A DNA stretch of 64,000 nucleotides from Ranitomeya imitator (taxonomy: Eukaryota), in NCBI RefSeq assembly GCF_032444005.1, contig NC_091291.1, positions 25,172,001 through 25,236,000 of the forward strand. Direction: 5' to 3'. Shown in pieces: positions 9-41,185 of the stretch; position 1 is the first letter of the stretch, and each line of letters begins with the position of its first letter. A model generated the notes under the pieces. The model did not search any database and was not told where the DNA came from. It saw only the letters and a program-made list of their open reading frames with translations. The position numbers and the translations under genes are program-made.

Positions 9-155
9 GATCATATCCATCAGTGTTGCACAAGTCTCCAGTGCAGCAATTCACATAAAATCGATATTTAACACGTTCAAGGAATCCTGAACCCTGAAGA
101 CCACAAATAGATTCGTTGGCACAGCCTTTATATATCGACTTAAAATAATGTCCAT
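9..155 (-). CDS. Gene A exon 3, two-domain three-finger protein (SPF/PLI-gamma/PINLYP-like), second half of LU domain 1
   Basis: ag/gt-bounded 147-nt phase-1 exon, manually translated: (D)GHYFKSIYKGCANESICGLQGSGFLERVKYRFYVNCCTGDLCNTDGYD. Has the LU-domain CC-x4-CN signature. Exons 4-5 lie left of the window. Confidence 0.95.
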
Positions 156-239
156 CTATTAGAGAAGTAAATAGACATGATGAAACCTGAATTGAGGTGG
201 TGATACTTTTGTTTAAAGGAAGAGTTGAGTTTTTCTCAC

Positions 240-353
240 CGATGTAAAAGTATTGGCAGACGGTCATACATCCAGCTGCGAGACATTCAATCTCAGACAC
301 ATTACATGTGGTGGAGTTATAGGACACACCCGACATACATCTATGGGAAAACA
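240..353 (-). CDS. Gene A exon 2, first half of LU domain 1
   Basis: tttccag| ... |gtgag, 114 nt, phase 1-1: (V)FSHRCMSGVSYNSTTCNVSEIECLAAGCMTVCQYFYI. Confidence 0.93.
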
Positions 354-1040
354 CTGGAAACAAGAGGTGACAATCCAATAATATTAAATTGAAACAATAA
401 AAAAGGGGAATTCAAGTGAAAAGGGGAATATTTTAGTTGAGAACCATATTTTTCATATTTGTAGTCAACGAGACTCGAGATGAGCTTTAAGTCTCACTTG
501 TACTTTATTGAAACTGACCCTTTCTTTTTTTTTAGAAATATCTCTTATAGGGCATGGTTTTACTCCAAAAAATTTCACAAGTGTATCATTTTTTTACATA
601 ACCCACAATAAGGTAACAATATAATGTCTCAGGAAAATATCTTGATGCAAAACTTTAATTGGACACTTAACTGAGCGAAAAGTTTCAAGCAAGTCAAGTT
701 AGCTTTCGAGTTACATTATGGTAGTGACTGATGTAAGAAGCTGTTACCTCTATAAAACCATCTTGAAAGATGTGAATCTATATGGTCACATCAGTAGGCA
801 AAGGAGAAGTGAATCCTGTATTATTTGGGGGGCCCATTTTTTAATAGTCTAATTTTTCCAAGAATTGTTTCCATATCTGGCTATGGCTTGATGTCACCAC
901 ATTAGCCAGAATGATTCAGAATTTGTATTTCACATTAGCAAATACTTGCTGAAAATGAAGGAGAAACAATGCATTAAAGTTGCCGACACTTCTCGGTGAA
1001 CTATGTGTATATGCTGTCAACGGACTTTCTCTAGTCTTAC

Positions 1041-1092
1041 CTGAGCCGACAAGAGCAGAGATCACGCAAAGCAAAGCGACCAGGTTCTTCAT
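1041..1092 (-). CDS. Gene A exon 1, signal peptide
   Basis: Kozak ccaccATG, MKNLVALLCVISALVGS, then a gtaag donor at phase 1. Confidence 0.93.
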
Positions 1093-1156
1093 GGTGGATG
1101 ACTGGTGGCTTCTCGGATTCTCTTCTGCTCGTCCTGTTGTCTGTACACCGGGATCA

Positions 1157-1163
1157 TATAAAT
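1157..1163 (-). promoter_or_regulatory. TATA-like box of gene A (paralogous TATTTATA at 22470-22477 and 41250-41257)
   Basis: (C/T)ATTTATA about 65 nt upstream of the ATG, at the same position in all three paralogues. Confidence 0.5.
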
Positions 1164-1714
1164 GCTCTACGGAAAGGTAAAGAAACTACTGTGCTATGGG
1201 ATAGATGGAGTCTATCCTATGGCACCATGGCACGCCATTATTTGCAAAGAAAATTCTCCTCTCGGCAAATGTTAAAGTTCTGGCACAAAACAACAATGAC
1301 GTGATGATGATGAGTCCAGAATATCTGTCAATTTGATCTTGCCAAAAAGAGAATGCCGTGTCTTGTTTGTTCTTGTGCAACTTTTATTATCTTAAAATAT
1401 CCCAAGGAAATGTATTTGGGTGAATTTATTTGGTTTGTGTGCACAAGCTTCTTATTCTTGACTTTCAGAAATAAATTTCCAATAATGAACAATATTTTTC
1501 TTTTTTTATTCAAACAGCTCCAAAATCCTGGTCTGATTAATTAAGAAAATAAATTCTGGAGGAAATTACTGAGCCTTGGGCACTATAGGTTGTGAAAGTT
1601 TATGGAATGAAAAGTGGCACCAAGAGGATGTAGAATAAGTATATTATTTTTAAAAAGTTACTCAAAGGTTACAAAAAAAAAAAAAATAGGCATGAAATGG
1701 GAAGTAAAGAGGCC

Positions 1715-1757
1715 ATACAACATGTTTCGATGCCGGACCGGCGTCTTCATCAGGTAT
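1715..1757 (-). ncRNA. Minimal type I hammerhead ribozyme motif (Penelope-type)
   Basis: Minus strand ATAC-CTGATGA-A-GACGCCG-GTC-CGGCATC-GAAA-CATG-TT-GTAT. Intact CUGAUGA/GAAA core, stem II with one mismatch, palindromic AACATGTT stem III, GUU cleavage triplet, 4-bp stem I. Confidence 0.7.
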
Positions 1758-3130: not shown

Positions 3131-3165
3131 TCTGACCATTGGTTTCAGGGTGGTAAGCATTTTAA

Positions 3166-3550: not shown

Positions 3551-3551
3551 G

Positions 3552-4880: not shown

Positions 4881-6504
4881 TTTTTTTACACCCTTCCCCA
4901 GTGCATAATAAGGAACATTTAATTTGCAACAAACAATTTACAAGCTTTAGAAATGTTTTGTTAAGCACGAAAAAAGGTTCCCCTGATTGGCCGAAATGCG
5001 TTGCGTTTTGCAAAAAGATATTTATTCCCTTCAGACCTTTAAATAATTTTATCAATTTTATTTTGAACTACTTCTGTTATTATTTTTCATTTTTCCACTC
5101 CAATAAAACCTTTTCCAGCCTCAGGTTGACTAATGGATGAGTTGCACCATTGAGCTAGTTTTGCTATAGTCTTTTGACGAATTGTTCACAGAAGGAAATT
5201 TTCTACTTGACCCAATACATCCCGAATGACGTTGACGACCCAACTGTTGGGGATCCAGGAGACATTGACTGAAACCCACACGATCACATACATTGCAAAG
5301 AAAGAGGAAAAAACGGAGTAACCATGAACGACAGGAATAGAATAAAAGACAAAGTTTTTTTAATAAATACATAAAAAATACAGAAAAATATCTCCGGTAT
5401 CTTCTGTGGAGATATGTGATTAGTTGTCAATGATGGAAGATACCATGATGAAAATAAAATTCCTGTGTATCCCATTATTATCCATGGATTTTTTTGACTT
5501 TTCTGGAAGCTTATTTCTGTGCGGCTCTGCTTATGTCTGATACTCTCTCTCTTTTTTAAGGTTTTATATGTCAAATAATTGTTCAATAAATATATTTCCT
5601 TTATACTTTGGGCTTGTTCTCCAATGCTTTCATACGATTTTGTAGCTGACTAAAGCAAATTACTGAGATACTTATCCAGCACATTGATTGCGCCCATTAA
5701 CCTTTTCTCTTCCAATTTTAAGGAGTAAAAAATAGTTTCATCATTAACCTGCTTATGTGATTATTACATCCCACAAGCTCAGATCTTCACAGCCCCATAG
5801 AACAAAACGCATTGTGGATTGTAGTGCCAGTGTAATTGCTTCTGACCAAATCATCTTTGCAATTTTTGCATCTGGCAATTTTCACTTTACAATAATCTAC
5901 TGTTAGGGCTAGCGGAACGCACCAAATATAAGACAGATAGTGTATGGTGCGTTCGCAGCCCGGGGTCCACCGTGCAGAGATGGAACCTGCTGCTAAGTAA
6001 TGACGGACTATATGGCGGTACTCATAAGTATACACACGTGGGTTAAACTTCACCCAGCGTGAAGGAAGCGATCCTGTTGCGTCACAGGATCGCGGTACCG
6101 CACATAGAAGATGATCAAGTAGTCAGCGAACTCAACCCCAACTAGGATTGAAGTCCGATTAGACCCTTGCTGGCACAACACCGCAACTGGGTGTGTAAGG
6201 AAGCAGAATAACAATATTAGGGCACAAGAGTGCATGCGGTGCCGCACTGACGAACGCCACTAACCACCCAGGCTTGGGTAAGGAAAGCACAGAGGAAGTG
6301 CACGGCGCCGTACTGGCGGTCACAGCAACTGGACGCTGTAACGTGTGATTAGTGCTGTAGGATAAGTCGGGCGCTAGATAGCAACCATACACCTTCCGCG
6401 AACAGACATTCAATAGGGAAGGGGTATCCAAGGACGACTTGCACTCACAACAAACACACGTAAGCAAATGTACACTAGTGCATGGCCGTGCGGTCATGCG
6501 CAGT

Positions 6505-9500
6505 TTATATAGTTGCAGCACAGGAAGTGGCCACAGAAACTTTGCCCTTCCAAGACCTGCCAAGAGGACCAATGGAATGTGCTGCAGAGCCTGAGCACAT
6601 GACCCTCGATCTCCAACGGGAGATCTTGCCCTGGGCATGCTCAGTGTGTGCAGACAAGGACTTAGTCCCAGAGAAGTCCGCTCGCTGCTGACCAGCACTG
6701 GCTTTAATGGCAGAAGCTGAAGAAGCAGCAGTAACTCTCTGTACAGAGTGAGACTGAGCAAGACGCTGGGACCGACGTCCATGCTGAGCAGACTCCACTG
6801 CGGCTGGATAAGAATGGGAGACCGCAGCGGAGATGGCCCGAGATTCCCCCTGTGCAAAAGCGGGAACTCGAGACCTAACATTACCCCCCCTCCTAGCCCC
6901 CCCCCCCCCTCCTTGGGCCTCGCTACGCTCGAAGGCAGCAATGAGCTGTGGGGCTCGAATGTTTTCAGCAGGCTCCCATGACCTGTCCTCTGGGCCATAA
7001 CCCTTCCAATCCACCAGATAGAACTTTTTGCCGCGTACCACCTTGCACCCCAAAATAGCGTTCACCTCGTAATCGTCCGTAGACGAACCCGATGTCCCGG
7101 CAGATGACTCGGAAAACCGGGACATGTATACGAGTTTCAAGAGGGACACATGAAAGGTGTCGGTGATACCCAAGCGTGGAGGAAGAGCCAAACGGTAGAC
7201 CACAGGATTAACCTGTTCGAGAACCTTGAAGGGACCCAAGTAGCGAGGAGCAAACTTAGTGGACTCAACTCGCAGCCTGATGTTACGGGCGGAGAGCCAC
7301 ACCAAGTCGCCAGGAGCAAAGGTCGGAGCGGGGCGCCGATGAACATCGGCGGAGGACCTCATTCTCTCCTTGGAGGCCCGAATGGCATCCTGCGTGCGGT
7401 CCCAAATGTCCCGTGCCTCCACAGCCCAGTCTGCCACCCTGGAGTCAGCAGAAGACACAGGCATGGGCACAGGAACACGCGGATGCTGGCCGTAATTTAG
7501 GAGGAATGGAGTCTGACCGGTGGAGTCGGCTACGGCATTGTTAAGTGCAAACTCTGCCCACGGTAGCAAGGATGCCCAGTCATCCTGCCTGGCAGAAACA
7601 AAATGTCGTAAATATGTGACCAAGGTCTGGTTGGCCCTCTCTACCAACCCATTCGTCTCGGGATGATATGCCGAAGAGAGATTCAACTCAATACTGAGTA
7701 GACGACAAAGCTCTCTCCAGAATCGAGACGCAAACTGGGGACCCCGGTCACTAGCAATTTTGTCTGGCATACCGTGTAGGCGAAAGATATGCTTGACGAA
7801 CAAGACAGCCAACGCCCGTGCAGAAGGTAGCCGTGGAAGAGGCACCAAGTGCACCATTTTGGAAAAATGGTCGGTGATCACCCAGATAATGGTGCAGTTA
7901 CGAGACTTGGGTAAGCCCACCACAAAGTCCATCCCGACCATCTCCCAGGGCCTGTCCGCCACCGGCAGAGGAAAAAGCAAACCAGCTGGCCGTTGCTGAG
8001 GAGTCTTGTTCTTGGCGCAAGAGACACACGCCCGAACATACTCTGCGACATCACGAGCCATATGCGGCCATCATACGTCCTCGCCAGTAACTCAGATGTC
8101 CTTTTAGTACCAAAATGTCCACCCACCCTGGATGAGTGTGCCCAAGAGAGAACCTCCGGTCGCAAATTGGATGGAACAAAAGTCTTGCCCGGGGGCACAG
8201 ACTCTAGCGAAACTGGGGCCACAGTTCTCAAGCTCTCGGTGGGGACAATAAGCCGAGGCTCCTCCTCCTCCTCCGCAGATGACACAACGGAGCGAGAGAG
8301 AGTGTCGGCCCGAATGTTCTTCTCCCCAGAAAGAAAATGGAGGGTGAAATGAAACCGGGAGAAGAATAAGGACCATCTGGCCTGGCGAGAATTCAACCGC
8401 TGGGCTGTCTGCAGGTACACCAAATTTTTATGGTCTGTGAAGACTTGGAAGGGAAAACATGCTCCCTCCAAGAGATGTCTCCACTCCGAGAAAGCCAACT
8501 TCATGGCTAGCAACTCCCTGTCCCCGATGGAATAATTCCTCTCTGCTGGCGAGAAGGTCTTGGAGAAAAAGAAGCAAGGATGCTTCCGACCTTGAGCATC
8601 CTTTTGGAAGAGGACTGCTCCAGCACCAACAGAAGAGGCATCCACCTCCATGATAAATGGCTTATCAACATCGGGGCGATGTAGGATGGGAGCGCTAGCG
8701 AAGTGTAACTTTATAGAGTTAAAGGCCTTGGAGACCTCCTCAGACCACAATTTGGGATTCGCCCCCTTCTTGGTGAGGGCAACCAAGGGAGCTACCAAAG
8801 TTGAGAAGTGCGGAATGAACTGGCGATAATAATTAATGAACCCCATAAAGCGCTGCACCGCTTTAAGAGAATGGGGTTCCTGCCAGTTCATCACAGCCTG
8901 TAGTTTGGCAGGATCCATAGCCAATCCCTGGGCAGAGATGATGTAGTCTAGGAATGGTAAGGACTCCTGCTCAAACATACACTTCTCCAACTTGGCATAG
9001 AGGGAGTTTGCCCGTAGAAGGTTGAAGACTTTGCAAACATCTCTCCGGTGGGAGTCAATATCTGGAGAGTAGATGAGAATATCATCCAGATAGACTACGA
9101 CCGAGGTGGAAAGCATATCCCGGAAGATATCGTTCACAAAGTCTTGGAAAACGGCTGGGGCATTACAGAGCCCGAAGGGCATCACCAGATATTCATAGTG
9201 CCCATCCCTGGTGTTAAAAGCCGTCTTCCATTCGTCCCCCTCACGGATGCAAATCAGGTTGTAAGCACCCCGCAGATCTAGTTTAGTAAATACCCTTGCT
9301 CCCCGAAGCCTATCGAAGAGCTCAGATATCAAGGGCAAAGGATACTTATTTTTAACGGTGATAGCGTTAAGACCCCTGTAGTCTATGCATGGATGCAATT
9401 CCCCATTCTTCTTCTGCACGAAGAAGAGCCCTGCCCCAGCAGGTGACACTGACTTCCTAATGAATCCTCTTGCCAGATTTTCCTGGATGTACTGTGACAT

Positions 9501-11024
9501 TGCCTCCGTCTCCGGGAGAGATAGCGGATAGACTCGACCCCGGGGAGGCTCAGCACCAGGAAAGAGATCAATAGGACAGTCATAGGGGCGATGGGGCGGA
9601 AGGATCTCCGCCGCCTTTTTGGAGAACACGTCTGCATAAGACCAATACTGCTTGGGGAGAGAGGAAAGATCTGCGGGTACCTCTGTAGTAGCAACCTGAA
9701 CGCACTCTCTCTGACACCTACCCCCACAAGATTCACCCCATCCCAGGATTCTGCCAGAGGACCACTCGATATGAGGAGAGTGGTACCGTAGTCAAGGTAT
9801 TCCCAACAGGACCTCATCAATTCCCTCTGGAATGACGAGCAGAGATATAATCTCCTGATGAGATGGAGACATGGACAGAGTAAAAGGGATGGTCTGGTGT
9901 GTTATCTGTGAGGGCAGTGTCGACCCATTCACCACTCGTACCGTTACTGGTTGAGCTAGCATAACCAGGGGTATTGCGTGACGTTGGGCGAAGGCAGAAG
10001 ACATAAAATTGCCCTCCGCCCCAGAATCCACGCAGAGCTCTACCGATTTGGAGAATGAGCCTATAGTAATTGTCCCCTTAAAGGACAATTTAGAGGCAAA
10101 CGTCGCCGTGTCTAGTGTACCTCCACCTACTACCACTAGACGCTGACGTTTCCTCGACCGCTGAGAACATCTGGTGGCTAGATGTCCTGACTGCTGGCAA
10201 ACATGACAGACCTTGAGTGCACAAGCGGTCCGAGACTTAGATCCCGCTTGTGTCACTTCCCTGGCCTCATGTGACTCAGGAACCAGGACCGGAGATTCCA
10301 GAGGTTTGGCGAAGGTAGGAGCCAGCCGAAACCTCTGCCTACACTGGGCTCGCTCTAACCTCCGCTCGTTAAAACGGAGGTCAATTCGAGTGTAGACAGT
10401 TATTAGCTCCTCCAGTGTGGCAGGAATCTCCCTAGTGGCCAGAGCGTCCTTAACGTGGTCAGCCAGGCCCCTCCAAAATATGGGGATAAGAGCTTTATCC
10501 GACCAATCCAGATCAGAAGCTAAAGTGCGGAATTGGACGGCAAAATGACTGACCAAGGACTCACCCTGAGTTAATGCCAGCAGTTGGAGCGCAGTATCAT
10601 GGGTGACTTGAGGTCCTAAAAAGACCTGTTTCAGAGTGCTCAGAAACAGCGGAGCACTCTGCACCACATGATCACCACGCTCCCACAGCGGCATAGCCCA
10701 TTCCAACGCCCTGTCCGACAAGAGAGACACTATAAATCCCACCTTAGCCCGCTCTGTGGGAAAACGTGCAGCCAGGAGCTCGAGGTGAATAGAGCACTGA
10801 CTCACAAATCCCCTACAAAACTTGCTATCACCAGAAAATTTTTCTGGCAGCGGGAGGCGAGAAAATGTCGGACCAGGGGTGGCAATGGACAGGGTTGCTG
10901 CAGCCACGCTAGCAGCCTGTACAGCAACTGCGGTAACATCCACAGCTGAGGTTGCGCTCTCAAGAGCCGCCAACCTACCCTCCAGCTGCTGGATATACCG
11001 CAAGGATTGCTGTTTGTCCGTCAT
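6505..11024 (-). pseudogene. gag-pro-pol (RT, RNase H, integrase, chromodomain) of element 1
   Basis: CCHC knuckle CHVCQQSGHLATRC, protease VDSGAEGNF, RT YLDD, integrase GMDFVVGLP and chromodomain YEVNAIL...[13 protein letters not shown]. Disrupted by TGG>TGA at 9792-9794 and a 1-nt deletion near 8073. Confidence 0.95.
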
Positions 11025-11040
11025 TACTAGCCAGACCCTG

Positions 11041-11051
11041 GCGCTAGTGTA
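11041..11051 (-). promoter_or_regulatory. Self-priming primer-binding site of element 1
   Basis: TACACTAGCGC is the exact complement of GCGCTAGTGTA (11623-11633), which starts 30 nt downstream of the LTR TATA box TATATAAA (11656-11663). Confidence 0.85.
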
Positions 11052-12165
11052 ATGTTAGGGCTAGCGGAACGCACCAAATATAAGACAGATAGTGTATGGT
11101 GCGTTCGCAGCCCGGGGTCCACCGTGCAGAGATGGAACCTGCTGCTAAGTAATGACGGACTATATGGCGGTACTCATAAGTATACACACGTGGGTTAAAC
11201 TTCACCCAGCGTGAAGGAAGCGATCCTGTTGCGTCACAGGATCGCGGTACCGCACATAGAAGGCGAGCAAGTAGTCAGCGAACTCAACCCCAACTAGGAT
11301 TGAAGTCCGATTAGACCCTTGCTGGCACAACACCGTAACTGGGTGTGTAAGGAAGCAGAATAACAATATTAGGGCACAAGAGTGCATGCGGTGCCGCACT
11401 GACGAACGCCACTAACCACCCAGGCTTGGGTAAGGAAAGCACAGAGGAAGTGCACGGCGCCGTACTGGCGGTCACAGCAACTGGACGCTGTAACGTGTGA
11501 TTAGTGCTGTAGGATAAGTCGGGCGCTAGATAGCAACCATACACCTTCCGCGAACAGACATTCAGTAGGGAAGGGGTATCCAAGGACTACTTGCACTCAC
11601 AACAAACACACGTAAGCAAATGTACACTAGCGCATGGCCGTGCGGTCATGCGCAGTTTATATAGTTGCAGCACAGGAAGTGGCCACAGAAACTTTGCCCT
11701 TCCAAGACCTGCCAAGAGGACCAATGGAATGTGCTGCAGAGCCTGAGCACATGACCCTCGATCTCCAACGGGAGATCTTGCCCTGGGCATGCTCAGTGTG
11801 TGCAGACAAGGACTTAGTCCCAGAGAAGTCCGCTCGCTGCTGACCAGCACTGGCTTTAATGGCAGAAGCTGAAGAAGCAACAGTAACTCTCTATACAGAG
11901 TGAGACTGAGCAAGACGCTGGGACCGACGTCCCTGCTGAGCAGACTCCACTGCGGCTGGATAAGAATGGGAGACCGCAGCGGAGATGGCCCGAGATTCCC
12001 CCTGTGCAGAAGCGGGAACTCGAGACCTAACATCTACCTCATTTAACCAACGTTTGCAGCTTGTAATTATCTGGCTAATCTTTGCGCCTTTTAATAATCT
12101 AGTGCGGTTGACTATTCTTATGATATTTAATTATCCCTGCATGCTAGCACCTAATTATTCATCTA

Positions 12166-15374: not shown

Positions 15375-15541
15375 TCAATAGATTGAAGGTTTATTCATCA
15401 AGTCACTCAATTTTATGGAAGGAACATTACAGTTCAGGAAAATTCTTTTTTTTTCTGTAAGCGCGATACAGCTGTCAAAGTTTACTTTGCAGACAACGTC
15501 ATTAGCACAACCTTTAGAGGAAAATTTCTTACTTGTGACAC
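15375..15541 (-). CDS. Gene B exon 5 (end of LU domain 2 + C-terminal tail, stop)
   Basis: ctacag|, (G)VTSKKFSSKGCANDVVCKVNFDSCIALTEKKRIFLNCNVPSIKLSDLMNKPSIY*. No GPI or TM tail, so predicted secreted. Confidence 0.93.
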
Positions 15542-15709
15542 CTGTAGGCAGAAAAACAACATAAACCATTAGAAAAAAATGTTGTACTAGCAAAATTCTA
15601 ATTACTTCATGCAGATACATTTCTTTAAAACACTATTACATGCTTTATTTTTATTGTATCTGCATTGGGTAATACAATGTCGTCATCCTTTAAGAAATAT
15701 TTTGCTCAC

Positions 15710-15859
15710 CAAAAACTATTAATTCCGCCCTATACTCAAAACATCTGTCCATGTCTCCAGTGCACTCCACCATGTGGTGACCCTTACATTCTTCCACAGT
15801 GTCCGTACAGTAGGCGGATGGACATAGTTTACCATTTGGTGTGGGATCATCTTTAGGAA
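15710..15859 (-). CDS. Gene B exon 4 (LU domain 2)
   Basis: 150-nt phase 1-1 exon: (L)PKDDPTPNGKLCPSAYCTDTVEECKGHHMVECTGDMDRCFEYRAELIVF. The NGxxCP motif is typical of PLI-gamma/SPF domain 2. Confidence 0.95.
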
Positions 15860-15929
15860 CTGGAGAAATAAATACAATTGTTTACAATAAATATTACATA
15901 GATAACAATCAGGTATAGATTAGTATTTA

Positions 15930-17292
15930 CCATATATAATCGAGTATAAGCCGAGACCCCTAATTTTGCCACAAAAAAACTGGGAAAACATATTGACTCA
16001 AGTATAAGCCTAGGGTGGGAAAGGCAGCAGCTACTGCTAAATGTCAAAAGTAAAAATAGATGCCAATCAAAGTAAAATTAATTGAGACATCAGTAGGTTA
16101 AATGTTTTTGAATATCCATATTGAATCAGGAGCCCCATATAATGCTCCATACAGTTCATGATGGGCCCCATAAGATGCTCCATACAAAATATGCCCCATA
16201 TAATGCTCCATAAAGTTCATGATGGGCCCCATAAGATGCTCTATATAAAAATATACCCCATATAATGCTGCATAAATGTTAATAATGCCTCATAAGATGC
16301 TCCATATTAAAATATGCCCCATATAATGCTGCATAAAAGGTTAATGATGGCCCCATAAGATGCTCCACAGAAAAATATGCCTGATATAATGCTCCATAAA
16401 GGTTAATGATGGCCCCATAAGATGCTCCACAGAAAAATATGCCCCATATAATGCTCCATAAAGGTTGATGGACCCATAAGATGCTCCATGGAATAATATG
16501 CCCCATATAATGCTCCATAAGATGCTCCAAAGAATAGTATGTCCCATATGCTGCTGCTGCGATTAAAAAAAATGACATACTCACCTCTTGTTGCTGGGGG
16601 AGAGATGCCGGTGTCCTGAGTAGGTGGGGACACCGGCATGCTACGGGGGACAGGAGCTGGTGTCGCTGCTGGCTCAAGCCCCCGGCACTTGCGATATTCA
16701 CCTGTCCCTGTTCCACCGCCGCACGCCGCTGTGTCTTCCGTGTCTCTGTAGTGACTGCTCAGGCAGAGGGCACGCACTAAACACGTCATAGTGCCCTCTG
16801 ACCTGAACATCACAGCCAGAGGATGACACAGCCCGGCAGTGGACCGGGTACAGTTGAATATCACATGGCTGACCCTCCCCCATCATACTCACCCCATCCT
16901 GGCGCGGTCGGTCCCTGCTTCTCAGATGGTCTCTGGTGCCGGCAGCTTGTTCCTGTGTTTAGCAGTCACAGGGTACAGCTCATTAAAGGAATGAATATGC
17001 GCTCCACGCCTATGGTTGTGGAGTCGCGTCTGTATTCATTACTTTAATTAGCGGTACCATGTGACCGCTGAACACAGGAACAAGCTGCCGGCACCAGAGA
17101 CCATCTGAGAAGCAGTGACGTGCAGAGACCGCGTCATGAGGGGATGAGTATGATGTGACAGCCGCCACTCCTGCTGCTCCCCTTCCCCCACCGACCCCCT
17201 GGGACAATGACTTGAGTATAAGCCGAGAAGAGAGGCACTTTCAGCCTAAAATAATGGGCTGAAAATCTCGGCTTATACTCGAATATGTACGG
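15930..17292. mobile_element. Tc2/pogo-like non-autonomous DNA element with internal ~30-bp minisatellite (gene B intron 3)
   Basis: TIR of the form ccgtatatactcgagtataagccga, TA flank. Paralogue at 35834-37101. Confidence 0.85.
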
Positions 17293-18252
17293 AAAGTTGT
17301 AAAAAAAACCTTTGGAAATTTGTAAAGAAAAAAATGTCATGTGTGTCACCATTTTTCGAGAACCGTAACATTTGGGGGGCTGTGTGAGAGCTTATTCATT
17401 TTTTTCTGCTAGCGCTGTTTACCAATCCAATTAATTTATTTTATATTTTGATAGATTGGACTTTTCTGAATGCAGTGATACTACACATGTATACTTCTTA
17501 TTTTTTTTAATTGTTCTATTTTTAATGGGGCAAAATAAGAGTGATCATCAACTGACATCTGGTTGTCATGACAACCTATCTGCGCCCCCCCTCCCTGAAA
17601 ATGTCATGGTTGTGCCAATGGGAGCTTGGAATGATGCGCCCCCTGACGGCGTCTGTTAAATACCGTTGTCAGAAAATGACAGCAGGATTTCACAGGATAA
17701 CAGCCACGGCCAGAGCTCTTATCCATCCACGTCTGTTAAAGGCACATCATGGCTGATTAAATCAGCCATCATGTGAGAGGAAAGATACGAGCTCGCCATG
17801 CAAGAGGACATCAAATACAGAGAGTCAGCATATGACATACAAGTAAGTCAAAGAACGTGAAAAGGTTAAACTTGAGAGGTATCACCTACAAGAATAACGA
17901 GGTCTGTACAGCATTTCAATCTCCAAACAAGAATGTTCCCACACCGGATAAATGGAAGAAGACTTGAAACAAAGTTTCTTGGAGGACTGCAAAACTTTTT
18001 AGTTAAAAAGGGTTAGTTCAGAGTTGGGGTGGGCATAATTCTTGTTTTTGTATTAATGCTACGAGTCTCAGCCAGATGACAAATCTCCTGACCCAACCAG
18101 CCTTGTCTCCGTCTAGGAATCTGTTGTTTTGGGTCACAAGACCAGTGTTCAAATAGGTATGGTCTCTATATTGCCCTGTAAATTAGCACATTGACTGGGA
18201 TTTACTCATTAGTCAAATATTACCCTACGATAAGCGACAACTTGACACTTAC

Positions 18253-18399
18253 GATCATATCCATCAGTGTTGCACAAGTTTCCAGTGCAGCATTTCGCAT
18301 AAAATCGAACTATAACACGTTCATGGAATGCTGAACCGCGCAGACCACAAATAGATTCGTTGGCGCAGCCTTTATATATCGACTTAAAATAATGTCCAT
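18253..18399 (-). CDS. Gene B exon 3
   Basis: (D)GHYFKSIYKGCANESICGLRGSAFHERVIVRFYAKCCTGNLCNTDGYD, canonical splice sites. Confidence 0.95.
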
Positions 18400-18483
18400 C
18401 TGTTAGAGAAATAAATAGACATCATGAAACCTGAATTGAGGTGGTGATACGTTTGTTAAAAAGAAGAATTGAGTTTTACTCAC

Positions 18484-18597
18484 CGACGTAAACAAATTGG
18501 CAGACGGTCATACATCCGGCTGCGAGACATTCAATCTCAGACACATTACATGTGGTGGAGTTATAGGACACACCCGACATACATCTATAGGAAAACA
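18484..18597 (-). CDS. Gene B exon 2
   Basis: (V)FSYRCMSGVSYNSTTCNVSEIECLAAGCMTVCQFVYV, canonical splice sites. Confidence 0.95.
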
Positions 18598-18848
18598 CTG
18601 GAAACAAGAAGTTACAATCCAGTAATATTAAATTGAGACAATAAAAAAGGGGAATTCAAGTGAAAAGGGGAATATTTTAGGTGTAATGAGAATCATGGTT
18701 TTCATATTCGTGGCCATCGAAACCCGGACATTTGTCATTGCTAACAATTTGATCCAATAATACCGTAAATTCTTGACTTTTCCATATCAAGAAAATGTGG
18801 ATGTTCTTCAAGTCCCACTTATACTTTATTGGAAATGACCTTTCTTAT

Positions 18849-21800
18849 CCTGGTCCTCCTCACCATATTCCCACAATCATTTCTACCTCCCATCCACGCT
18901 CTATCACAAACTTCCGTAACCTCTCTAACCTTATACCCATTCACCCAGCCCCCGCTTCCCCAGTCCCACTAACAGGAGCTCTGTGGAACGCTCGCTCTGT
19001 CTGCAACAAGCTTTCATACATCCATGATCTTTTTGTTACTACCAAACTTTCTTTCCTCGCTATCACCGAAACCTGGCTCACCCCTTCTGACACAGCCTCC
19101 CCTGCTGCACTCTCTTACGGTGGCTTCCACCTTTCCCACACACCCCGCCCCAGCAGCAAACATGGCGGAGGAGTTGGCTTTCTCCTGTCAGATAACTACT
19201 CCTTCACCCCAATCCCACTGCCACCCTCTGTTACCCTCCCTTCCTTTGAGGTGCACTTTGTGCGCATCTACTCCCCCACCAACCTCCAACTGGCTGTCAT
19301 TTACCGCCCCCCAGGGCCAGCCACCACCTTCTTTGACTACTTCACCACCTGGCTACTTCATTTCCTTTCTGCGGACATCTCCACTATCATCATGGGCGAC
19401 TTCAACAAACCCATTGACACTTCCCTCTCAGCTGACACTAAACTTCTAACTCTCACTTCGTCCTTCGGCCTCAATCAATGGTCTTCTGCAGCCACTCACA
19501 AAGACGGTCACACACTGGACCTCATCTTCACACGCCTTTGCTCTCTATCTAACCTTTCTAACTCACCTCTTCCACTCTCTGACCACAACCTTCTCACATT
19601 CTCATCTCTCTCCACTCCATGTCTACAATCCCCACCCCACAAACTTTCACACCCTCGCAGAAATCTTAAACATCTTGACCTACATTCATTCTCTGAATCC
19701 CTCCTCCCTCTCACAAACATAAGTTCCATACACAATGCGGATGACGCTACCACTCTATATAACACCACAATAGCTGTAGCTTTGGAATCTGCTGCCCCAC
19801 TTACACATACCAAAGCTCGCAAAATCAACAGACAGCCCTGGCACACCAGCCTGACCAAAGAACTGAGGCGAGCTTCCAGGGCTGCTGAGCGCAGATGGAA
19901 AAGATCCCACTCTAACGAGCACTTCATCGCATTCAAACAGTCCCTCACTACTTTCAAGACCACACTCGCCACAGCTAAACAAACCTACTTCTCATCTCTC
20001 ATATCCTCTCTGTCTCACAACCCTAAACAGTTATTCAACACCTTCAATTCTCTCCTCCGTCCCCCAGCACCTCCTCCCTCCCCACTTATCTCCACTGAAG
20101 ACTTTGCCTCATTTTTCAAGCAGAAGATTGATAGCATCAGAGACAGTTTTGGTCAACAACCCCCTGAGCCCTTCCTCCCGATTTCCCAGCCCTCCACCTC
20201 CAAAACCAACTTCTCCACCATTACAGAAGATCAACTCTCCACTCTACTCTCAAGATCGCATCTCACCACCTGTGCACTTGACCCGCTCCCATCCCACCTC
20301 ATCCCAAACCTCACCACAGTCTTCATCCCAACCCTAACCCATCTCTTCAACCTATCACTAACAACTGGTGTTTTCCCCTCAAGCTTTAAACATGCCTCCA
20401 TCACACCTATCCTCAAAAAGCCTTCTCTTGACCCATCCTCTGTATCTAGCTATCGCCCTATATCACTTCTCCCCTATGCCTCCAAACTACTGGAACAACA
20501 CGTTTACCTTGAACTGTCCTCCCATCTCTCTTCTTGCTCCCTCTTTGACCGCCTACAATCTGGCTTCCGGTCACACCATTCCACTGAAACTGCCCTAACT
20601 AAAGTCACCAATGACCTCTTAACCGCCAAGAGCAAGCGACACTACTCTGTCCTCCTCCTCCTCAACCTGTCGGCTGCCTTTGACACAGTGGACCATTTCC
20701 TATTATTACAGACCCTCTCATCCCTTGGCATCACAGACTTGGCCCTATCCTGGATCTCATCATACCTAACAGACCGGACATTCAGCGTCTCCCACTCACA
20801 CACCACCTCCTCACCTCGCCCTCTATCTGTCGGAGTCCCACAAGGTTCAGTCCTCGGGCCCCGGCTCTTCTCCATTTACACCTTTGGCCTGGGACAGCTC
20901 ATAGAATCTCATGGCTTTCAGTATCACCTCTATGCTGTCGACACACAGATCTACATCTCTGGACCAGATATCACCTCCCTTCTAACCAGAATCCCTCAAT
21001 GCCTGTCCACTATTTCATCCTTCTTCTCCGCTAGATTTCTGAAACTTAACATGGACAAAACAGAATTCATCATCTTTCCCCCATCTCACGCAACCCCCCC
21101 AACGAACCTATCCATTACAGTAAATGGCTGCCCACTCTCCCCAGTCCCACCAGCTCGCTGCCTCGGGGTAATCCTTGACGCTGATCTGTCCTTCAAACCA
21201 CATATCCAAGCCCTTTCCACTTCCTGCCGACTTCAACTCAAAAATATTTCACGAATCCGTTCATTCCTCAACCATGAATCTGCAAAAACCCTAGTCCATG
21301 CCCTCATCATCTCTCGCCTTGACTACTGCAACCTCCTGCTCTGTGGCCTCCCCTCTAACACTCTCGCACCCCTCCAATCTATTCTAAACTCTGCTGCCCG
21401 ACTAATCCACCTGTCCCCCCGCTATTCCCCGGCCTCTCCTCTCTGTCAATCCCTTCACTGGCTCCCCATTGCCCAGAGACTCCACTACAAAACCCTAACC
21501 ATGACGTACAAAGCCATCCACAACCTGTCTCCTCCATACATCTGTGACCTCGTATCCCGGTACTTACCTACACGCAACCTGCGATCCTCACCAGATCTCC
21601 ATCTCTACTACCCTCTTATCTCCTCTTCCCACAATCGTATACAAGATTTCTCTCGCGTATCCCCCCTACTCTGGAACCCTCTACCCCAACATATCAGACT
21701 CTCACCTACCATCGAAACCTTCAAAAAGAACCTGAAGACCCACCTCTTCCGACAAGCCTACAACCTGCAGTAACCACCGATCGACCAAACCGCTGCATGA

Positions 21801-21935
21801 CCAGCTCTATCCTCACCTACTGTATCCTCACCCATCCCTTATAGATTGTGAGCCTTCGCGGGCAGGGTCCTCACTCCTCCTGTACCAGTTATGACTTGTA
21901 TTGTTTAAGATTATTGTACTTGTTTTTATTATGTA
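18849..21935 (+). mobile_element. L2-clade LINE (APE endonuclease + RT), 5'-truncated, in gene B intron 1
   Basis: ORF open to 21773 with TETWL, GDFN, SDH, YRPISLL and QGSVLGP motifs. Absent from gene A and gene C intron 1 (empty site near 40158). About 90 bp of host intron is missing at the junction. Confidence 0.96.
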
Positions 21936-22353
21936 AAAAATATGTATAAATATCTTGATGCAAAATTGTAATTGGACTCTAAACTGAGTGAAAAGTTTCA
22001 AGCAGGTCAAGTTAGTTATCATTTTACAATATGGTAGTGCCTGATGTAAGAACCTGCTTCCTCTATAACAACACCATGAAAGATGTGAATCTATATGAAC
22101 ACATCACTAGGAAAAGAAGAAGTGAATCCTGCATTATTTGGGAGCCCATTTATTAACAGTCTAATTTTTGCAACAATTTTTTCCAAATCTGATTATGGCT
22201 TGATGTCACCACATTATCCAGAATGATTCACAATTTGTATTTCACATTAGCAAATACTTGCTGAAAATGAAGGAGAAACAATGCATTAAAGTTGCCGTTC
22301 ACTTCTCGGTGAACTATGTGTATATGCTGTCAACGGACTTTCTCTAGTCTTAC

Positions 22354-22405
22354 CTGAGCCGACAAGAGCAGAGATCACGCAAAGCAAAGCGACCAGGTTC
22401 TTCAT
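22354..22405 (-). CDS. Gene B exon 1, signal peptide
   Basis: ccaccATG, MKNLVALLCVISALVGS|gtaag. Joined exons give 630 nt, 209 aa. Confidence 0.95.
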
Positions 22406-22983: not shown

Positions 22984-22993
<10 letters not shown>

Positions 22994-27089: not shown

Positions 27090-27264
27090 TAACAGTTGAG
27101 CGTTGTGTGGACTCTGGAGCAGAGGGGAATTTCATGCCCTCTGCCTTCGCTCAGCGCCACGACTCACCAAACCGGTGACGGTTCAAGTGGTAAATGGGTC
27201 GACACAGCCCTCACACATCAGACCATCCCTTTCTCATTATCTATGTCCCCTTCCCATCAGATTA

Positions 27265-34964: not shown

Positions 34965-35131
34965 TCAATAGATTGAAGGTTTATTCATCAAGTCACTCAA
35001 TTTTATGGAAGGAACATTACAGTTCAGGAAAATTCTTTTTTTTTCTGTAAGCGCGATACAGCTGTCAAAGTTTACTTTGCAGACAACGTCATTAGCACAA
35101 CCTTTAGCGGAAAATTTCTTACTTGTGACAC
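34965..35131 (-). CDS. Gene C exon 5
   Basis: (G)VTSKKFSAKGCANDVVCKVNFDSCIALTEKKRIFLNCNVPSIKLSDLMNKPSIY*. Confidence 0.93.
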
Positions 35132-35300
35132 CTATAGGCAGAAAAACAACATAAACCATTAGGAAAAAAATGTTGCACTAGCCAAATTCTAATTACTTCC
35201 TGCAGATACATTTCTTTAATACACTATTAAATGCTTTATTTTTATTGTATCTGCATTGGGTAATACAATGTCGTCATCCTTTAAGAAATATTTTGCTCAC

Positions 35301-35450
35301 CAAAAACTATTACTTCCGCCCTATACTCAAAACATCTGTCCATGTCTCCAGTGCACTCCACCATGTGGTGACCCTTACATTCTTCCACAGTGTCCGTACA
35401 GTAGGCGGATGGACAGAGTTTACCATTTGGTGTGGGATCATCTTTAGGAA
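35301..35450 (-). CDS. Gene C exon 4
   Basis: (L)PKDDPTPNGKLCPSAYCTDTVEECKGHHMVECTGDMDRCFEYRAEVIVF. Confidence 0.95.
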
Positions 35451-35833
35451 CTGGAGAAATAAATACAATTGTTTGCATTAAATATTATCATTTACATATG
35501 ACTCACGGTCAAAAAGATATGTTCATATAATTCCATTATGTTGCTACTTTTTTTATAATTTTGGCTCCAGTCCTCTACCATGTAAATACAAAGTAGGAGC
35601 CAAACAACAAGCATAATTCTCTTCTTCCAAAAGATATAGCATTTTTTTTTATCATTATAGCCACATAAAGCTTGTTTTTTGTTAGATGAGTTGTACTTTT
35701 GAATGACATCATTCATTTTACCATGTGACGCACTGGAATGCGGGAAATAAAATTGCAAGTGTGTTGAAAATACAATATGATTCACAGGTCAATACAATTA
35801 CACAGATAACAATCAGGTATAGATTAGTATTTA

Positions 35834-37101
35834 CCGTATATACTCGAGTATAAGCCGAGACCCCTAATTTTGCCACACAAAAAACTGGGAAAACGTATTG
35901 ACTCGAGTATAAGCCTAGGGTGGGAAATGCAGCAGCTACTGCTAAATTTCATTAATAAAAATAGATACCAATAAAAGTAAAATTAATTGAGACATCAGTA
36001 GGTTAAATGTTTTTGAATATCCATACAGTTCATGATGGGCCCCATAAGATCCTCCATACAAAAAATTTGCCTCATAGAATGCTGCACGGATGTTAATAAT
36101 GCCTCATAAGATGCTCCATATTAAAATATGCCCCATGTAATGCTGCATAAAAGGTTAATGATGGCCCCATAAGATGCTCCACAGAAAAAATATGCCCGAT
36201 ATAATGCTCCATAAAGGCTAATGATGGCCCCATAAGATGCTCCACAGAAAACTATGCCCAATATAATGCTCCATAAAGGTTGATGGCCCCATAAGATGCT
36301 CCATAGAATAATATGCTCCATATAATGCTCCATAAGATGCTCCAAAGAATAATATGTCCCATATGCTGCTGCTGTGATAAAAAAAAAAATGACATACTCA
36401 CCTCTTGTTGCTGGGGGAGAGATGCCGGTGTCCTGAGCAGGCGGGGATACAGGCACGCTATGGGGGACAGGAGCTGGTGTCGCCGCTGGCTCAGGCCCCC
36501 GGCACTTGCGATATTCATCTGTCCCTGTTCCACCGCCGCACGCCGCTGTGTCTTCCGTGTCTCTGTAGTGACTGCTCAGGCAGAGGGCACGCACTAAACA
36601 CGTCATTGCGCCCTCTGACCTGAACATCACAGCCAGAGGATGACACAGCCCAGCAGTGGAACGGGTACAGGTGTATATCACATGGCTGACCCTCCCCGTC
36701 ATACTCACCCCATCCTGGCGCGGTCCCTGTTTCTCAGATGGTATCTGATGCCGGCAGCTTGTTCCTGTGTTCAGCAGTCACAGGGTACCACTCATTAAAG
36801 GAATGAATATGCGCTCCACGCCCATGGTAGTGGAGTTGCGTCAATATTCATTACTTTAATTAGCGGTACCATGTGACCGCTGAACACAGGAACAAGCTGC
36901 CGGCGCCAGAGACCATCTGAGAAGCAGTGACGTGCAGAGACCGCGCCAGGAGGGGATGAGTATGATGTGACAGCCGCCACTCCTGCCGCTCCCTCTCCCC
37001 AGCCGACCCCCAGGGACAATGACTTGAGTATAAGCTGAGAGAGGCACTTTCAGCCTAAAATAATGGGCTGAAAATCTCGGCTTATACTCGAGTATGTACG
37101 G
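35834..37101. mobile_element. Tc2/pogo-like element (paralogue of 15930-17292)
   Basis: ta|ccgtatatactcgag...ctcgagtatgtacgg|ta. Confidence 0.85.
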
Positions 37102-38035
37102 TAAGTTGTAAAAAAAAAACCTTTGGAAATTTGTAAAGAAAAAATGTCATGTGTGTCACCATTTTTCGAGAACCGTAACATTTGGGGGGCTGTGTGAGAG
37201 CTTATTCATTTTTTGTACCCTGATAACATTTTATTACAATGTTGCAGTTGTAAAAAACAGAATTCTGTCCTTTTTATTTTTTTTTCTGCTAACGCTGTTT
37301 ACCAATCCAATTAATTTATTTTATATTTTGATAGATTGGACTTTTCTGAATGCAGTGATACCACATATGTATACTTCTTATTTTTTTTAATTGTTCTATT
37401 TTTAATGGGGCAAAAGAGTTGTGATCATCAACAGACTTCCGGTTGTCATGATAACCTATCTGCGCCCCGCCCCCCTGAAAATGTCATGGTTGTGTCGATG
37501 GGAGCTTGGAATGATGCACCCCCTGACGGCGTCTGTTAAATGCCATTGTCAGAAAATGACAGCAGGATTTCACAGGATAACAGCCACGGCCGGAGCTCTT
37601 ATCCATCCACGTCTGTTAGAGGCACATGATGGCTGATTAAATCAGCCATCATGTGAGAGGAAAGATACGAGCTCGCCATGCGAGCCGACATCAAAGACAG
37701 GAAGTCAGCATATGGCATACAAGTAAGTCAAAGAACGTGAAAAGGTTAAACTTGAGAGGTCTAACCTACAAGAATAACGAGGTCTGTACAGCATTTCAAT
37801 CTCCAAACAAGAATGTTCCCACACCGGATAAATGTAAGAAGACTTGAAACAAAGTTTCTTGGAGGACTGCAAAACTTTTTAGTTAAAAAGGGTTAGTTCA
37901 GAGTTGGGATAGGCATAATTCTTGTTTTTGTATTAATGCTACGAGTCTCAGCCAGATGACAAATCTCCTGACCCAACCAGCCTTGTCTCCGTCTAGGAAT
38001 CTGTTGTTTTGGGTCACAAGACCAGTGGTCAAATA

Positions 38036-39462
38036 CCGTATATACTCGAGTATAAGCCGAGATTTTCAGCCCAAATTTTTGGGCTGAAAGTGCCCCTCTC
38101 GGCTTATACTCGAGTCAATGTGGGTGGCAGGGTCGGCGGGTGAGGGGGTGAGGGCGCTGAGGTATACTTACCTAGTCCCAGCGATCCTCGCGCTGTCCCT
38201 GCCGTCCCACGGGCTTCTGTGCTGCAGCTTCTTCCCCTCTTCAGCGGTCACGTGGGACCGCTCATTAGAGATATGAATAAGCGGCTCCACCTCCCATAGG
38301 GGTGGAGCCGCCTGTTCATTCCTCTAATCAGCGGTGCCGGTGACCGCTGACAGGAAGAGCTGCGGCACCGAAGACCAGGCAGAGGGACAGCGCGAGGATC
38401 ACCAGGACTAGGTAAGTATAGCATATTCACCTGTCCTCGTTCCAGCCGCCGGGCGCCGCTCCATCTTCCCGGCCGGCGCCTCCATCTTCCCGGCGTCTGC
38501 GCTCTGACTGTTCAGGCAGAGGGCGCGATGACGCATACAGTGTGCGCGGCGCCGTCTGCCTGATCAGTCAGAGCAGAGATGCCGGGAAGATGGAGGCGCC
38601 GGAACGAGACGCCGGGAGCTGCAATCAAGGGAGGTGAGTATGTGGTTTTTTTTTTTATTGCAGCAGCGGCGGCAGAGATTTCTATGGGGCACAATGAACG
38701 GTGCAGAGCACCGTATATGGCACAGCAATGGGGCACAATGAACGGTGCAGAGCATTGTATATGGGGCACAGCTATGGGGCACAATGAACGGAGCAGAGCA
38801 CCGTATATGGCACAGCAATGGGGCACAATGAACGGTGCAGAGCATTGTATATGGGGCACAGCAATGGGGCACAATGAACGGAGCAGAGCACTGTATATGG
38901 CACAGCAATGGGGCACAATGAACGGTGCAGAGCACCGTATATGGCACAGCAATGGGGCACAATGAACGGTGCAGAGCACTGTATATGGCACAGCAATGGG
39001 GCACAATGAACGGTGCAGAGCACTGTATATGGCACAGCAATGGGGCACAATGAACGGTGCAGAGCACCGTATATGGCACAGCAATGGGGCACAATGAACG
39101 GTGCAGAGCACTGTATATGGCACAGCAATGGGGCACAATGAACGGTGCAGAGCACTGTATATGGCACAGCAATGGGGCACAATGAACGGTGCAGAGCACC
39201 GTATATGGCACAGCTATGGGGCACAATGAACGGTGCAGAGCACTATATGGGGCACAGCTATGGGGAAATAATGAACAGTGTAGAGCACTATATGGCACAT
39301 CTATGGGGAAATAATGATCTATTTTTATTTTTGAAATTCACCGGTAGCTGCTGCATTTCCACCCTAGGCTTATACTCGAGTCAATAAGTTTTCCCAGTTT
39401 TTTGTGGCAAAATTAGGGGGGTCGGCTTATACTCGGGTCGGCTTATACTCGAGTATATACGG
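38036..39462. mobile_element. Second Tc2/pogo-like element, specific to gene C intron 3, with a 44-bp minisatellite (about 38690-39310)
   Basis: Perfect ccgtatatactcgagtataagccga TIRs and TA TSD. Empty site near 18165. Unit atggggcacaatgaacggtgcagagcactgtatatggcacagca. Confidence 0.92.
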
Positions 39463-39561
39463 TAGATATTTTCTCTATATTGCCCTGTAAATTAGCACAT
39501 TGACTGGGATTTACTCATTAGTCAAATATTACCCTACGATAAGCGACAACTTGACACTTAC

Positions 39562-39708
39562 GATCATATCCATCAGTGTTGCACAAGTCTCCAGTGCAGC
39601 ATTTCGCATAAAATCGAAGTATAACACGTTCATGGAATGCTGAACCGCGCAGACCACAAATTGATTCGTTGGCACAGCCTTTATATATCGACTTAAAATA
39701 ATGTCCAT
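39562..39708 (-). CDS. Gene C exon 3
   Basis: (D)GHYFKSIYKGCANESICGLRGSAFHERVILRFYAKCCTGDLCNTDGYD. Confidence 0.95.
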
Positions 39709-39792
39709 CTATTAGAGAAGTAAATAGACATGATGAAACCTGAATTGAGGTGGTGATACTTTTGTTAAAAAGAAGAATTGAGTTTTACTCAC

Positions 39793-39906
39793 CGACGTAA
39801 ACAAATTGGCAGACGGTCATACATCCGGCTGCGAGACATTCAATCTCAGACACATTACATGTGGTGGAGTTATAGGACACACCCGACATACATCTATAGG
39901 AAAACA
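39793..39906 (-). CDS. Gene C exon 2
   Basis: Identical in nucleotide sequence to gene B exon 2. Confidence 0.95.
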
Positions 39907-40582
39907 CTGGAAACAAGAAGTTACAATCCAGTAATATTAAATAGAGACAATAAAAAAGGGGAATTCAAGTGAAAAGGGGAATATTTTAGTTGTAATGAGA
40001 ATCATGGTTTTCATATTTGTGGCCATCGAAACCCGGACATTTGTCATTGCTAACAATTTGATCCAATAATACCGTAAATTCTTGACTTTTCCATATCAAG
40101 AAAATGTGGATGTTCTTCAAGTCCCACTTATACTTTATTGGAAATGACCTTTCTTATAGAGCATGGTTTTATTCCATAAAATTTCACAAGTGTAGTATTT
40201 TTTACATAACGCACAACACGGTAACAATATGTCTCTAAGTAAATATCTTGATGCTAAATTGTAATTGGACTCTAAACTGAGCGAAAAGTTTCAAGCAGGT
40301 CAACTTAGTTATCATTTTACAATATGGTAGTGCCTGATGTAAGAACCTGCTTCCTCTATAACAACACCATGGAAGATGTGAATCTATAGGAACACATCAC
40401 TAGGAAAAGAAGAAGTGAATCCTGCATTATTTGGGAGCCCATTTATTAATAGTCTAATTTTTGCAACAATTTTTTCCAAATCTGATTATGGCTTGATGTC
40501 ACCACATTAGCCAGAATGATTCAGAATTTGTATTTCACATTAGCAAATACTTGCTGAAAATGAAGGAGAAACAATGCATTAA

Positions 40583-41055
40583 TGCAGTCAAAGAACAAGA
40601 AGAAATGCGGCACTCACCCAATTGTAGCTGTGTAATTCGTGAGCTTTATTGGAAAAAACTATTTAATACATCCGTCAGGACATCAGGTATGCAGGAGGGT
40701 GCGGTAATGGAGTACGGACGATGGCCGTTTCGCGTCTGGACTCGTCGAAGCACTTATCGTGCGAAACGGCCGTCGTCCGTACTCCATTACCGCACCCTCC
40801 TGCATACCTGATGTCCTGACGGATGTATTAAATAGATTTTTCCAATAAAGCTCACGAATTACACAGCTACAATTGGGTGAGTGCCGCATTTCTTCTTGCT
40901 CTTTGACTGCATTGTGGATCTTGTTTGATATTTTATGCAGAGCACCATATACCCACAGCTTTCGTGACACCTGCTATTCAGCTGTTCTCTATTAGTCCTG
41001 CTCAGTGGAGCTCGTATTCCTCTAGTGCCGTCCTGTTCCTCTACATTCTTTGCCG
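40583..41055 (+). mobile_element. Penelope-derived pLTR insertion with 5' inversion in gene C intron 1
   Basis: 15-bp TSD GAAACAATGCATTAA at 40568-40582 and 41056-41070. About 153-bp inverted arms at 40581-40733 and 40761-40913. Hammerhead-like motif at 40737-40778, AATAAA and a GTGAGT donor. Absent from genes A and B. Confidence 0.82.
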
Positions 41056-41133
41056 GAAACAATGCATTAAAGTTGCCGACACTTCTCGGTGAACTATGTG
41101 TATATGCAGTCAACTGACTTTCTCTAGTCTTAC

Positions 41134-41185
41134 CTGAGCCGACAAGAGCAGAGATCACGCAAAGCAAAGCGACCAGATTCTTCAT
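41134..41185 (-). CDS. Gene C exon 1, signal peptide
   Basis: MKNLVALLCVISALVGS|gtaag. Joined exons give 209 aa. Confidence 0.95.

Follow-up and report, generated by a model that had tools for sequence, protein, structure and literature searches.

The window analysed here is a stretch of 64,000 nucleotides from the poison frog Ranitomeya imitator (NCBI RefSeq assembly GCF_032444005.1, contig NC_091291.1, positions 25,172,001 to 25,236,000 of the forward strand; positions below count from its first letter). It consists of vertebrate DNA without assembly gaps and carries three tandem genes on the minus strand, termed A, B and C. These encode predicted secreted proteins with two Ly6/uPAR (LU) domains, which belong to the 2D-TFPs (three-finger proteins with two domains) and resemble the sodefrin precursor-like factors (SPFs). 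The gene models were assembled from a scan for AG...GT-bounded, phase-1, cysteine-rich exons of set lengths and a separate search for terminal exons, yielding exons of 52, 114, 147, 150 and 167 nt. Three copies of the signal-peptide exon, at 41185, 22405 and 1092, lie on the minus strand. An original prediction, made from the sequence alone, had proposed this five-exon, all-phase-1 architecture, and the scan reproduces it to the base, with gene A represented by exons 1-3 only. All introns are GT-AG introns in phase 1 with GTAAG or GTGAG donors, and a polypyrimidine tract precedes every acceptor AG. As predicted, B and C are complete and uninterrupted: their coding sequences are 630 nt each and open throughout, and the encoded 209-aa proteins differ at four residues. 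Gene A is 88-89% identical to B and C over its 104 in-window residues. In all three gene models each LU domain is split over two exons with phase-1 introns, an arrangement that is general for the two-LU (2D-TFP) family. A tblastn search returned zero further gene copies within the 64-kb window. Being spliced, the genes were expected to escape open reading frame (ORF) detection, and the bacterial-style ORF list indeed misses A, B and C.

Splicing of gene C can be followed in contigs from the public runs X1, X5, X15 and X19, which come from four studies and were aligned onto 34960-40959. The contigs join 35131 to 35301 (169 nt skipped), 35450 to 39562 (4,111 nt) and 39708 to 39793 (84 nt). The skipped stretches are gene C introns 4, 3 and 2; their ends read CT..AC on the plus strand, which corresponds to GT..AG on the minus strand. 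At the exon-2 acceptor the contigs end in a 58-nt loose end at 39909, of which the first 30 letters match 41137-41166 in exon 1 exactly; intron 1 is thus supported through this match and not through an aligned junction. An origin of the transcript's first exon from another paralogue was considered and rejected, as an exact search identified the loose end as the window's own exon 1. Spliced transcripts across the predicted junctions, whose absence would have refuted the original prediction, are accordingly seen in four runs for introns 2-4 and by the loose end for exon 1. Contig depth over the exons is 50-530 and that over unique intron-1 sequence (39960-40959) is about zero in the same runs, which are therefore RNA-type data. 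The contigs carry gene B-type bases at 35416, 39619 and 39662, and run X5 carries the C form across most of exon 3 (39591-39692); hence mRNAs of both the B and the C type exist. Furthermore, about half of the words of the gene A exon 2-3 region are present in small RNA-like runs of the same studies, and gene A is likely expressed as well.

Table 1. Genes, domains and mobile elements in the window
Feature	Positions	Strand	Description
Gene C, complete	34965..41185	-	Exons 41185-41134, 39906-39793, 39708-39562, 35450-35301, 35131-34965; 209 aa
Gene B, complete	15375..22405	-	Exons 22405-22354, 18597-18484, 18399-18253, 15859-15710, 15541-15375; 209 aa
Gene A, exons 1-3 only	9..1092	-	Exons 1092-1041, 353-240, 155-9; exons 4-5 beyond the left edge of the window
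Gene C exon 1, signal peptide	41134..41185	-	17 codons + 1 nt; same exon in A and B with 1 nt difference
Gene C LU domain 1	39562..39906	-	Exons 2 and 3 around an 84-nt intron; 10 Cys; all three sequons; CCxxDLCN at end
Gene C LU domain 2	34965..35450	-	Exons 4 and 5 around a 169-nt intron; 9 Cys; 17-residue hydrophilic tail, then stop
LINE ORF2, intact	18795..21773	+	992 aa (endonuclease and reverse transcriptase); antisense within intron 1 of gene B
Ty3/gypsy chromovirus	5898..12038	-	Between A and B; gag/protease, reverse transcriptase (RT)-RNase H and integrase-chromodomain ORFs

The array had been described as hidden, a claim that did not hold: A, B and C are all present in RefSeq and UniProt, one of them under an SPF-type name. 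A search of the 48-aa exon-3 translation against 1.84 billion representatives retrieved a 212-aa frog protein, and word-index searches from there led to P0036. This is RefSeq XP_069597014.1, recorded as 'phospholipase A2 inhibitor and Ly6/PLAUR domain-containing protein-like [Ranitomeya imitator]'; its identity to gene C amounts to 100% across 209 aa. Gene B is XP_069597012.1 (P0071), in which its four diagnostic residues are present and whose gene span of 7,031 nt equals 22405-15375. Gene A makes up the first 104 aa of XP_069598966.1 / CAJ0947460.1 (P0070), with a gene span of 2,934 nt, and its protein is named 'Sodefrin-like factor' in UniProt. A literature search found no paper on this locus or on Ranitomeya 2D-TFPs.

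The B and C proteins carry three N-glycosylation sequons, NST(30), NVS(35) and NES(69), and a single hydrophobic segment, the N-terminal signal peptide (residues 1-20). The C-terminal tail is not hydrophobic and shows no glycosylphosphatidylinositol (GPI) or transmembrane signal. The mature protein has a mass of about 21 kDa and contains 19 cysteines after the signal peptide, ten in domain 1 and nine in domain 2. Across 58 relatives 14 columns are invariant, 12 of them cysteines, and the CCxxxxCN motif at the end of domain 1 is present. An AlphaFold2 model built on the 58-sequence alignment has a mean predicted local distance difference test (pLDDT) score of 85.7 and two beta-rich domains. Full-length matches among Swiss-Prot models are mouse and human PINLYP, rat RoBo-1 and about 20 snake subunits of the gamma-type phospholipase A2 inhibitor (PLI-gamma), with TM 0.55-0.71 and 17-24% identity (19-20% for mouse and human PINLYP). 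Solved structures matched by Foldseek are uPAR, CD177, TEX101 and C4.4A, with E values of 3e-6 to 4e-4; a phmmer search of PDB sequences with the full protein had no match at E<=10. On single-exon translations Pfam returned only sub-threshold matches, all to exon 3 (UPAR_LY6, PLA2_inh and Toxin_TOLIP). Taken together, hydrophobicity, sequon positions and fold agree with the predicted signal peptide, two LU domains, three sequons and lack of a GPI or transmembrane anchor. The fold matches likewise bear out the placement of these spliced, tandemly duplicated genes among secreted two-LU proteins of the SPF/PLI-gamma/PINLYP (2D-TFP) superfamily.

The cysteine pattern of the A/B/C-type protein is 10+9, not the 10+8 typical of beta-SPFs. 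In gene C, LU domain 1 has Gly at residue 26 in place of the canonical Cys2 (window ~39879-39881), and new cysteines occur at residue 50 in domain 1 (~39807-39809) and residue 179 in domain 2 (~35053-35055). The tail after the last cysteine comprises 17 residues in the Ranitomeya and Dendrobates proteins and 10 in Anomaloglossus. The lost Cys2, the new cysteine pair and the tail are common to the D. tinctorius and Anomaloglossus orthologues, and one R. variabilis paralogue is without both new cysteines. Among dendrobatoid paralogues the pattern is labile, and the mature proteins contain 16-22 cysteines across 58 sequences. Co-variation of the Cys2 loss with the two new cysteines is suggested by raw counts, whereas the tree-controlled median p is 0.5-1 with too few independent pairs. 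That the two new cysteines, in a total of 19, are present together in A, B, C and their D. tinctorius and Anomaloglossus orthologues and absent together in the one R. variabilis paralogue hints at a rewired or inter-domain disulfide, or at a free thiol; the inter-domain disulfide may serve as a lead.

The relationships of the three genes were addressed by a maximum-likelihood tree of 60 proteins. The homologues recovered by word-index searches were from frogs and fish only, and the tree is without salamander alpha/beta SPF, snake PLI-gamma and mammalian PINLYP sequences. The nearest protein with a curated name is the sodefrin precursor-like factor C of Plectrohyla (UGY75777.1), at 44% identity. 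Plectrohyla SPF C is a lip-gland SPF assigned by its authors to the beta clade, for which the pattern of 10+8 cysteines is typical (PMC8613984). A, B and C form a clade with three R. variabilis proteins, one of D. tinctorius and one of Anomaloglossus (SH-aLRT 100), set on a long stem. Within it B and C pair with a support of 94 and adjoin an R. variabilis orthologue (support 99), and the partner of gene A is a different R. variabilis orthologue (support 92). The orthologues are 209-210 aa long in D. tinctorius and R. variabilis and 202 aa in Anomaloglossus. The clade as a whole is part of a large radiation that comprises paralogues from dendrobatoids and other frogs and includes Plectrohyla SPF C. 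The 56-row amphibian clade with A, B and C excludes a Dendropsophus PINLYP-like protein (P0098) and the PINLYP-like proteins of fish (support 95). The homology and phylogeny check proposed at the outset leans to the SPF side: 44% identity to Plectrohyla SPF C compared with 17-24% to PLI-gamma and PINLYP, and a clade nested in the anuran SPF-type radiation. From these sequence relationships we conclude that A, B and C are most plausibly SPF-type paralogues, rather than PINLYP orthologues or close relatives of PLI-gamma. In the sampled set they appear as a subfamily confined to dendrobatoid frogs. Their molecular identity itself is near certain.

The array has a repeat unit of about 19-21 kb in self-comparison, and the B and C copies are 94-96% identical outside the exons. 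Their introns match at 3,125 of 3,284 aligned bases (95%), and identity reaches 98% around exons 2-3 as well as in the proteins. In addition, the upstream flank of B (22991-27010) is duplicated upstream of C (41744-45120) at 95-96% identity, so that the duplication unit spans several kb of 5' flank with any promoter that it contains. B and C are a young pair. The split between A and B/C is not recent, because R. variabilis has an orthologue of each type, and it is older than the split between R. imitator and R. variabilis. Full-length A and C differ at 26 positions, clustered at residues 52-55, 76-91 and 153-189, with zero differences in the signal peptide and in residues 92-152. The predicted recent expansion therefore stands for B and C (98% amino acid and ~95% intron identity) and fails for A versus B/C. 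Beyond the window, at least six 2D-TFP proteins (P0070, P0071, P0075, P0033, P0046 and P0039) are encoded on a single 373,142-bp contig of the older assembly GCA_958301615.1. The three genes described here thus do not represent the full size and diversity of the R. imitator array.

Mobile elements and repeats are found between and within the genes. Intron 1 measures 3,756 nt in gene B compared with 1,227 nt in gene C because of the LINE insertion, which looks like a young one and which gene C lacks. Intron 3 of gene C holds, at 38560-39320, a tandem repeat of about 45 bp (self-match offsets 44, 90, 134, 180 and 224); this repeat is missing from intron 3 of gene B, which is 2,393 nt long compared with 4,111 nt in C. 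The intron sizes of B and C thus differ because of insertions, the LINE in intron 1 of B and the ~45-bp repeat in intron 3 of C. The same repeat gives rise to long, spurious, cysteine-rich ORFs on the minus strand and to very high contig depth in the RNA-type runs. The Ty3/gypsy chromovirus forms array spacer and is not part of the genes; its long terminal repeats (5898-6885 and 11050-12038) are 98.7% identical. A broken copy of the same family, itself invaded by transposable elements, lies on the plus strand at ~24000-32200 between B and C, and a repeat of about 113 bp (30200-30760) is located inside the degraded retroelement. Upstream of gene C, satellite-like arrays are present with periods of about 35 bp (51890-55124, 3.2 kb) and about 90 bp (56730-58077, 1.3 kb).

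As a whole, the locus is probably best explained as an expressed tandem array of secreted two-LU SPF-type proteins that would act in chemical signalling. The array genes encode predicted secreted, N-glycosylated proteins of ~21 kDa with two three-finger (Ly6/uPAR) domains and no membrane anchor. As for other members of the SPF branch, the proteins would enter a skin or gland secretion. Once secreted, they would act as extracellular ligands that engage a receptor or binding partner in another individual through their variable finger loops, and the ligand would thereby be a proteinaceous chemical signal. Salamanders use SPFs as courtship pheromones. Several frogs, among them the dendrobatids Hyloxalus, Leucostethus and Epipedobates, show upregulation of SPFs in male glands (PMC12617036). 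By analogy with these systems, a courtship or social signalling role of the A, B and C proteins is possible, if somewhat doubtful when judged on its own.

Several points weigh against this proposal. The expressing runs are coded for tissue, sex and stage, and give no link of A, B or C to a breeding gland. Finger swelling is not known from any Ranitomeya species, the genus not having been sampled histologically (PMC8819055). Furthermore, specialised mucous glands were lost either in the Dendrobatinae ancestor or independently in the two dendrobatines studied, the reconstruction being ambiguous (PMC8819055). Owing to the lack of a known finger swelling in Ranitomeya and the possible ancestral gland loss, a male hand-gland pheromone starts from a lower prior. 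Most Hyloxalus 2D-TFP transcripts are not gland-biased (PMC12617036), and many amphibian 2D-TFPs are without a known role (PMC11659521). On the molecular side, the assignment of A, B and C to the beta clade is indirect, made through one named frog SPF and the literature. In Pfam the gene C protein scores 16.8 bits for UPAR_LY6 against a cut-off of 24.8 that close relatives pass (P0001 28.0, P0008 31.8 and P0034 30.8 bits); the low score is probably due to the lost Cys2. Finally, the estimates of selection all derive from very few substitutions: the 8 differences between B and C in 630 coding positions are four synonymous and four nonsynonymous ones (dS 0.030, dN 0.008, dN/dS 0.27), and A versus B/C gives dN/dS values of 0.64-0.85 over exons 1-3.

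The higher of these ratios, together with the youth of the duplicates and the richness of the locus in transposable elements, would fit recent, non-functional copies or pseudogenes that merely look intact. Such an explanation is very improbable and effectively refuted: every exon is open, the splice sites are canonical, spliced B- and C-type mRNAs are found at a depth of 50-530 with the intron at about zero, and orthologues of similar length persist in D. tinctorius, R. variabilis (209-210 aa) and Anomaloglossus (202 aa). A more serious contender is a 2D-TFP with neither a signalling nor an inhibitory role, which might serve in mucosal or skin defence, have a developmental or tissue function, or be a drifting member of a fast-turnover family. 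For most 2D-TFPs of amphibians a function has yet to be assigned, and expression of some has been seen in embryos, eyes or regenerating tissue (PMC11659521). The prevailing lack of gland bias among Hyloxalus transcripts and the lack of a known male hand gland in Ranitomeya fit here too, as does the highly labile cysteine pattern across the family. In addition, the transcripts occur in runs of at least four unrelated studies, which suggests a commonly sampled tissue and not a rare gland. Against this stand the retention of an intact subfamily, set on a long stem with good support, in four dendrobatoid species, the intact and spliced ORFs and the B versus C dN/dS below 1, and we consider a role of this kind rather unlikely.

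PLI-gamma is oligomeric, and the odd cysteine count of the Ranitomeya proteins could favour disulfide-linked oligomers as well. The genes might encode a PLI-gamma-type inhibitor or toxin binder, either circulating (liver or plasma) or in the skin, that neutralises phospholipases A2 or other toxins. The predicted structure matches ~20 Swiss-Prot snake PLI-gamma subunits and PINLYP over the full length (TM 0.55-0.68), the automatic NCBI names read 'phospholipase A2 inhibitor ...-like', and neighbours in the ESM Atlas are annotated with PF02988 (PLA2_inh). This case consists entirely of modelled fold similarity and automatic names. Identity to PLI-gamma and PINLYP is 17-24%, whereas a named frog SPF reaches 44%; the clade falls among SPF-type paralogues of anurans, with a separate frog PINLYP-like protein outside it. 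The full protein finds no match to Pfam PLA2_inh (PF02988) at E<=1, and the exon-3 piece alone reaches 17.7 bits, below the cut-off of 22. An inhibitor is thus an improbable outcome. Similarly improbable is a redeployment of the subfamily from courtship to another use in Ranitomeya and Dendrobates, a reading that arises because the subfamily is kept and still duplicating in these genera, which are without a known male hand swelling. The proteins might then serve as a cue carried by water or skin within the chemical communication known from Ranitomeya (parent-tadpole or tadpole-detection), or as a binder in the handling of sequestered toxins. The chemical-signal proposal is retained as the preferred explanation of the locus.

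Among amphibian chemical signals, the protein pheromones of the SPF family are understood best. In poison frogs, which serve as a leading model of courtship and parental care, chemical cues are little studied, and the subfamily could be followed there by sex- and tissue-resolved expression and proteomics.

The closest known counterparts of the Ranitomeya proteins are the anuran beta-clade SPFs, for example Plectrohyla SPF A-C and the SPFs of dendrobatid finger and arm glands. They share with these the secreted form, a length of ~190-210 aa and two LU domains. With Plectrohyla SPF C they align over the full length at 44% and belong to the same multigene, tandemly expanding family and the same tree radiation. 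Unlike the beta-clade SPFs, the Ranitomeya proteins have 10+9 cysteines, have lost the canonical domain-1 Cys2 and carry a 17-residue tail after the last cysteine; unlike the gland SPFs, they come from a genus with no known male gland. Snake PLI-gamma (for example Elaphe quadrivirgata PLI-gamma A/B and Crotalus CNF) and mammalian PINLYP are similar in their full-length two-LU fold (TM 0.60-0.68), signal peptide and lack of a GPI anchor, as well as in a conserved P-N-G at the start of domain 2. They differ in their low identity of 17-24%, in the PLA2_inh family to which the frog protein does not match, and in the existence of a separate frog PINLYP-like gene outside the A/B/C clade. The best solved-structure matches, uPAR, TEX101, C4.4A and CD177, also have tandem LU domains, but are GPI-anchored or membrane-associated receptors with 2-4 domains and 12-20% identity.

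At the level of the locus, 2D-TFP arrays are concentrated on one chromosome in eight frog genomes, for example on chr 11 of Nidirana daunchina, chr 7 of Xenopus tropicalis and chr 10 of Rana temporaria (PMC11659521). The Ranitomeya genes are likewise packed by tandem duplication, with three genes in 41 kb. That study did not include a dendrobatid genome (PMC11659521), and the subfamily described here is, in our sample, dendrobatoid-specific. Frog 2D-TFP arrays and SPFs in dendrobatid glands were already known (PMC11659521; PMC12617036), as were the RefSeq records of A, B and C. Compared with these known systems, the locus adds to the published picture and reveals no new kind of system; its cysteine pattern and tail are modestly unusual. 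What it contributes are exact, transcript-verified models for three paralogues, which define a dendrobatoid-specific subfamily of SPF-type proteins.

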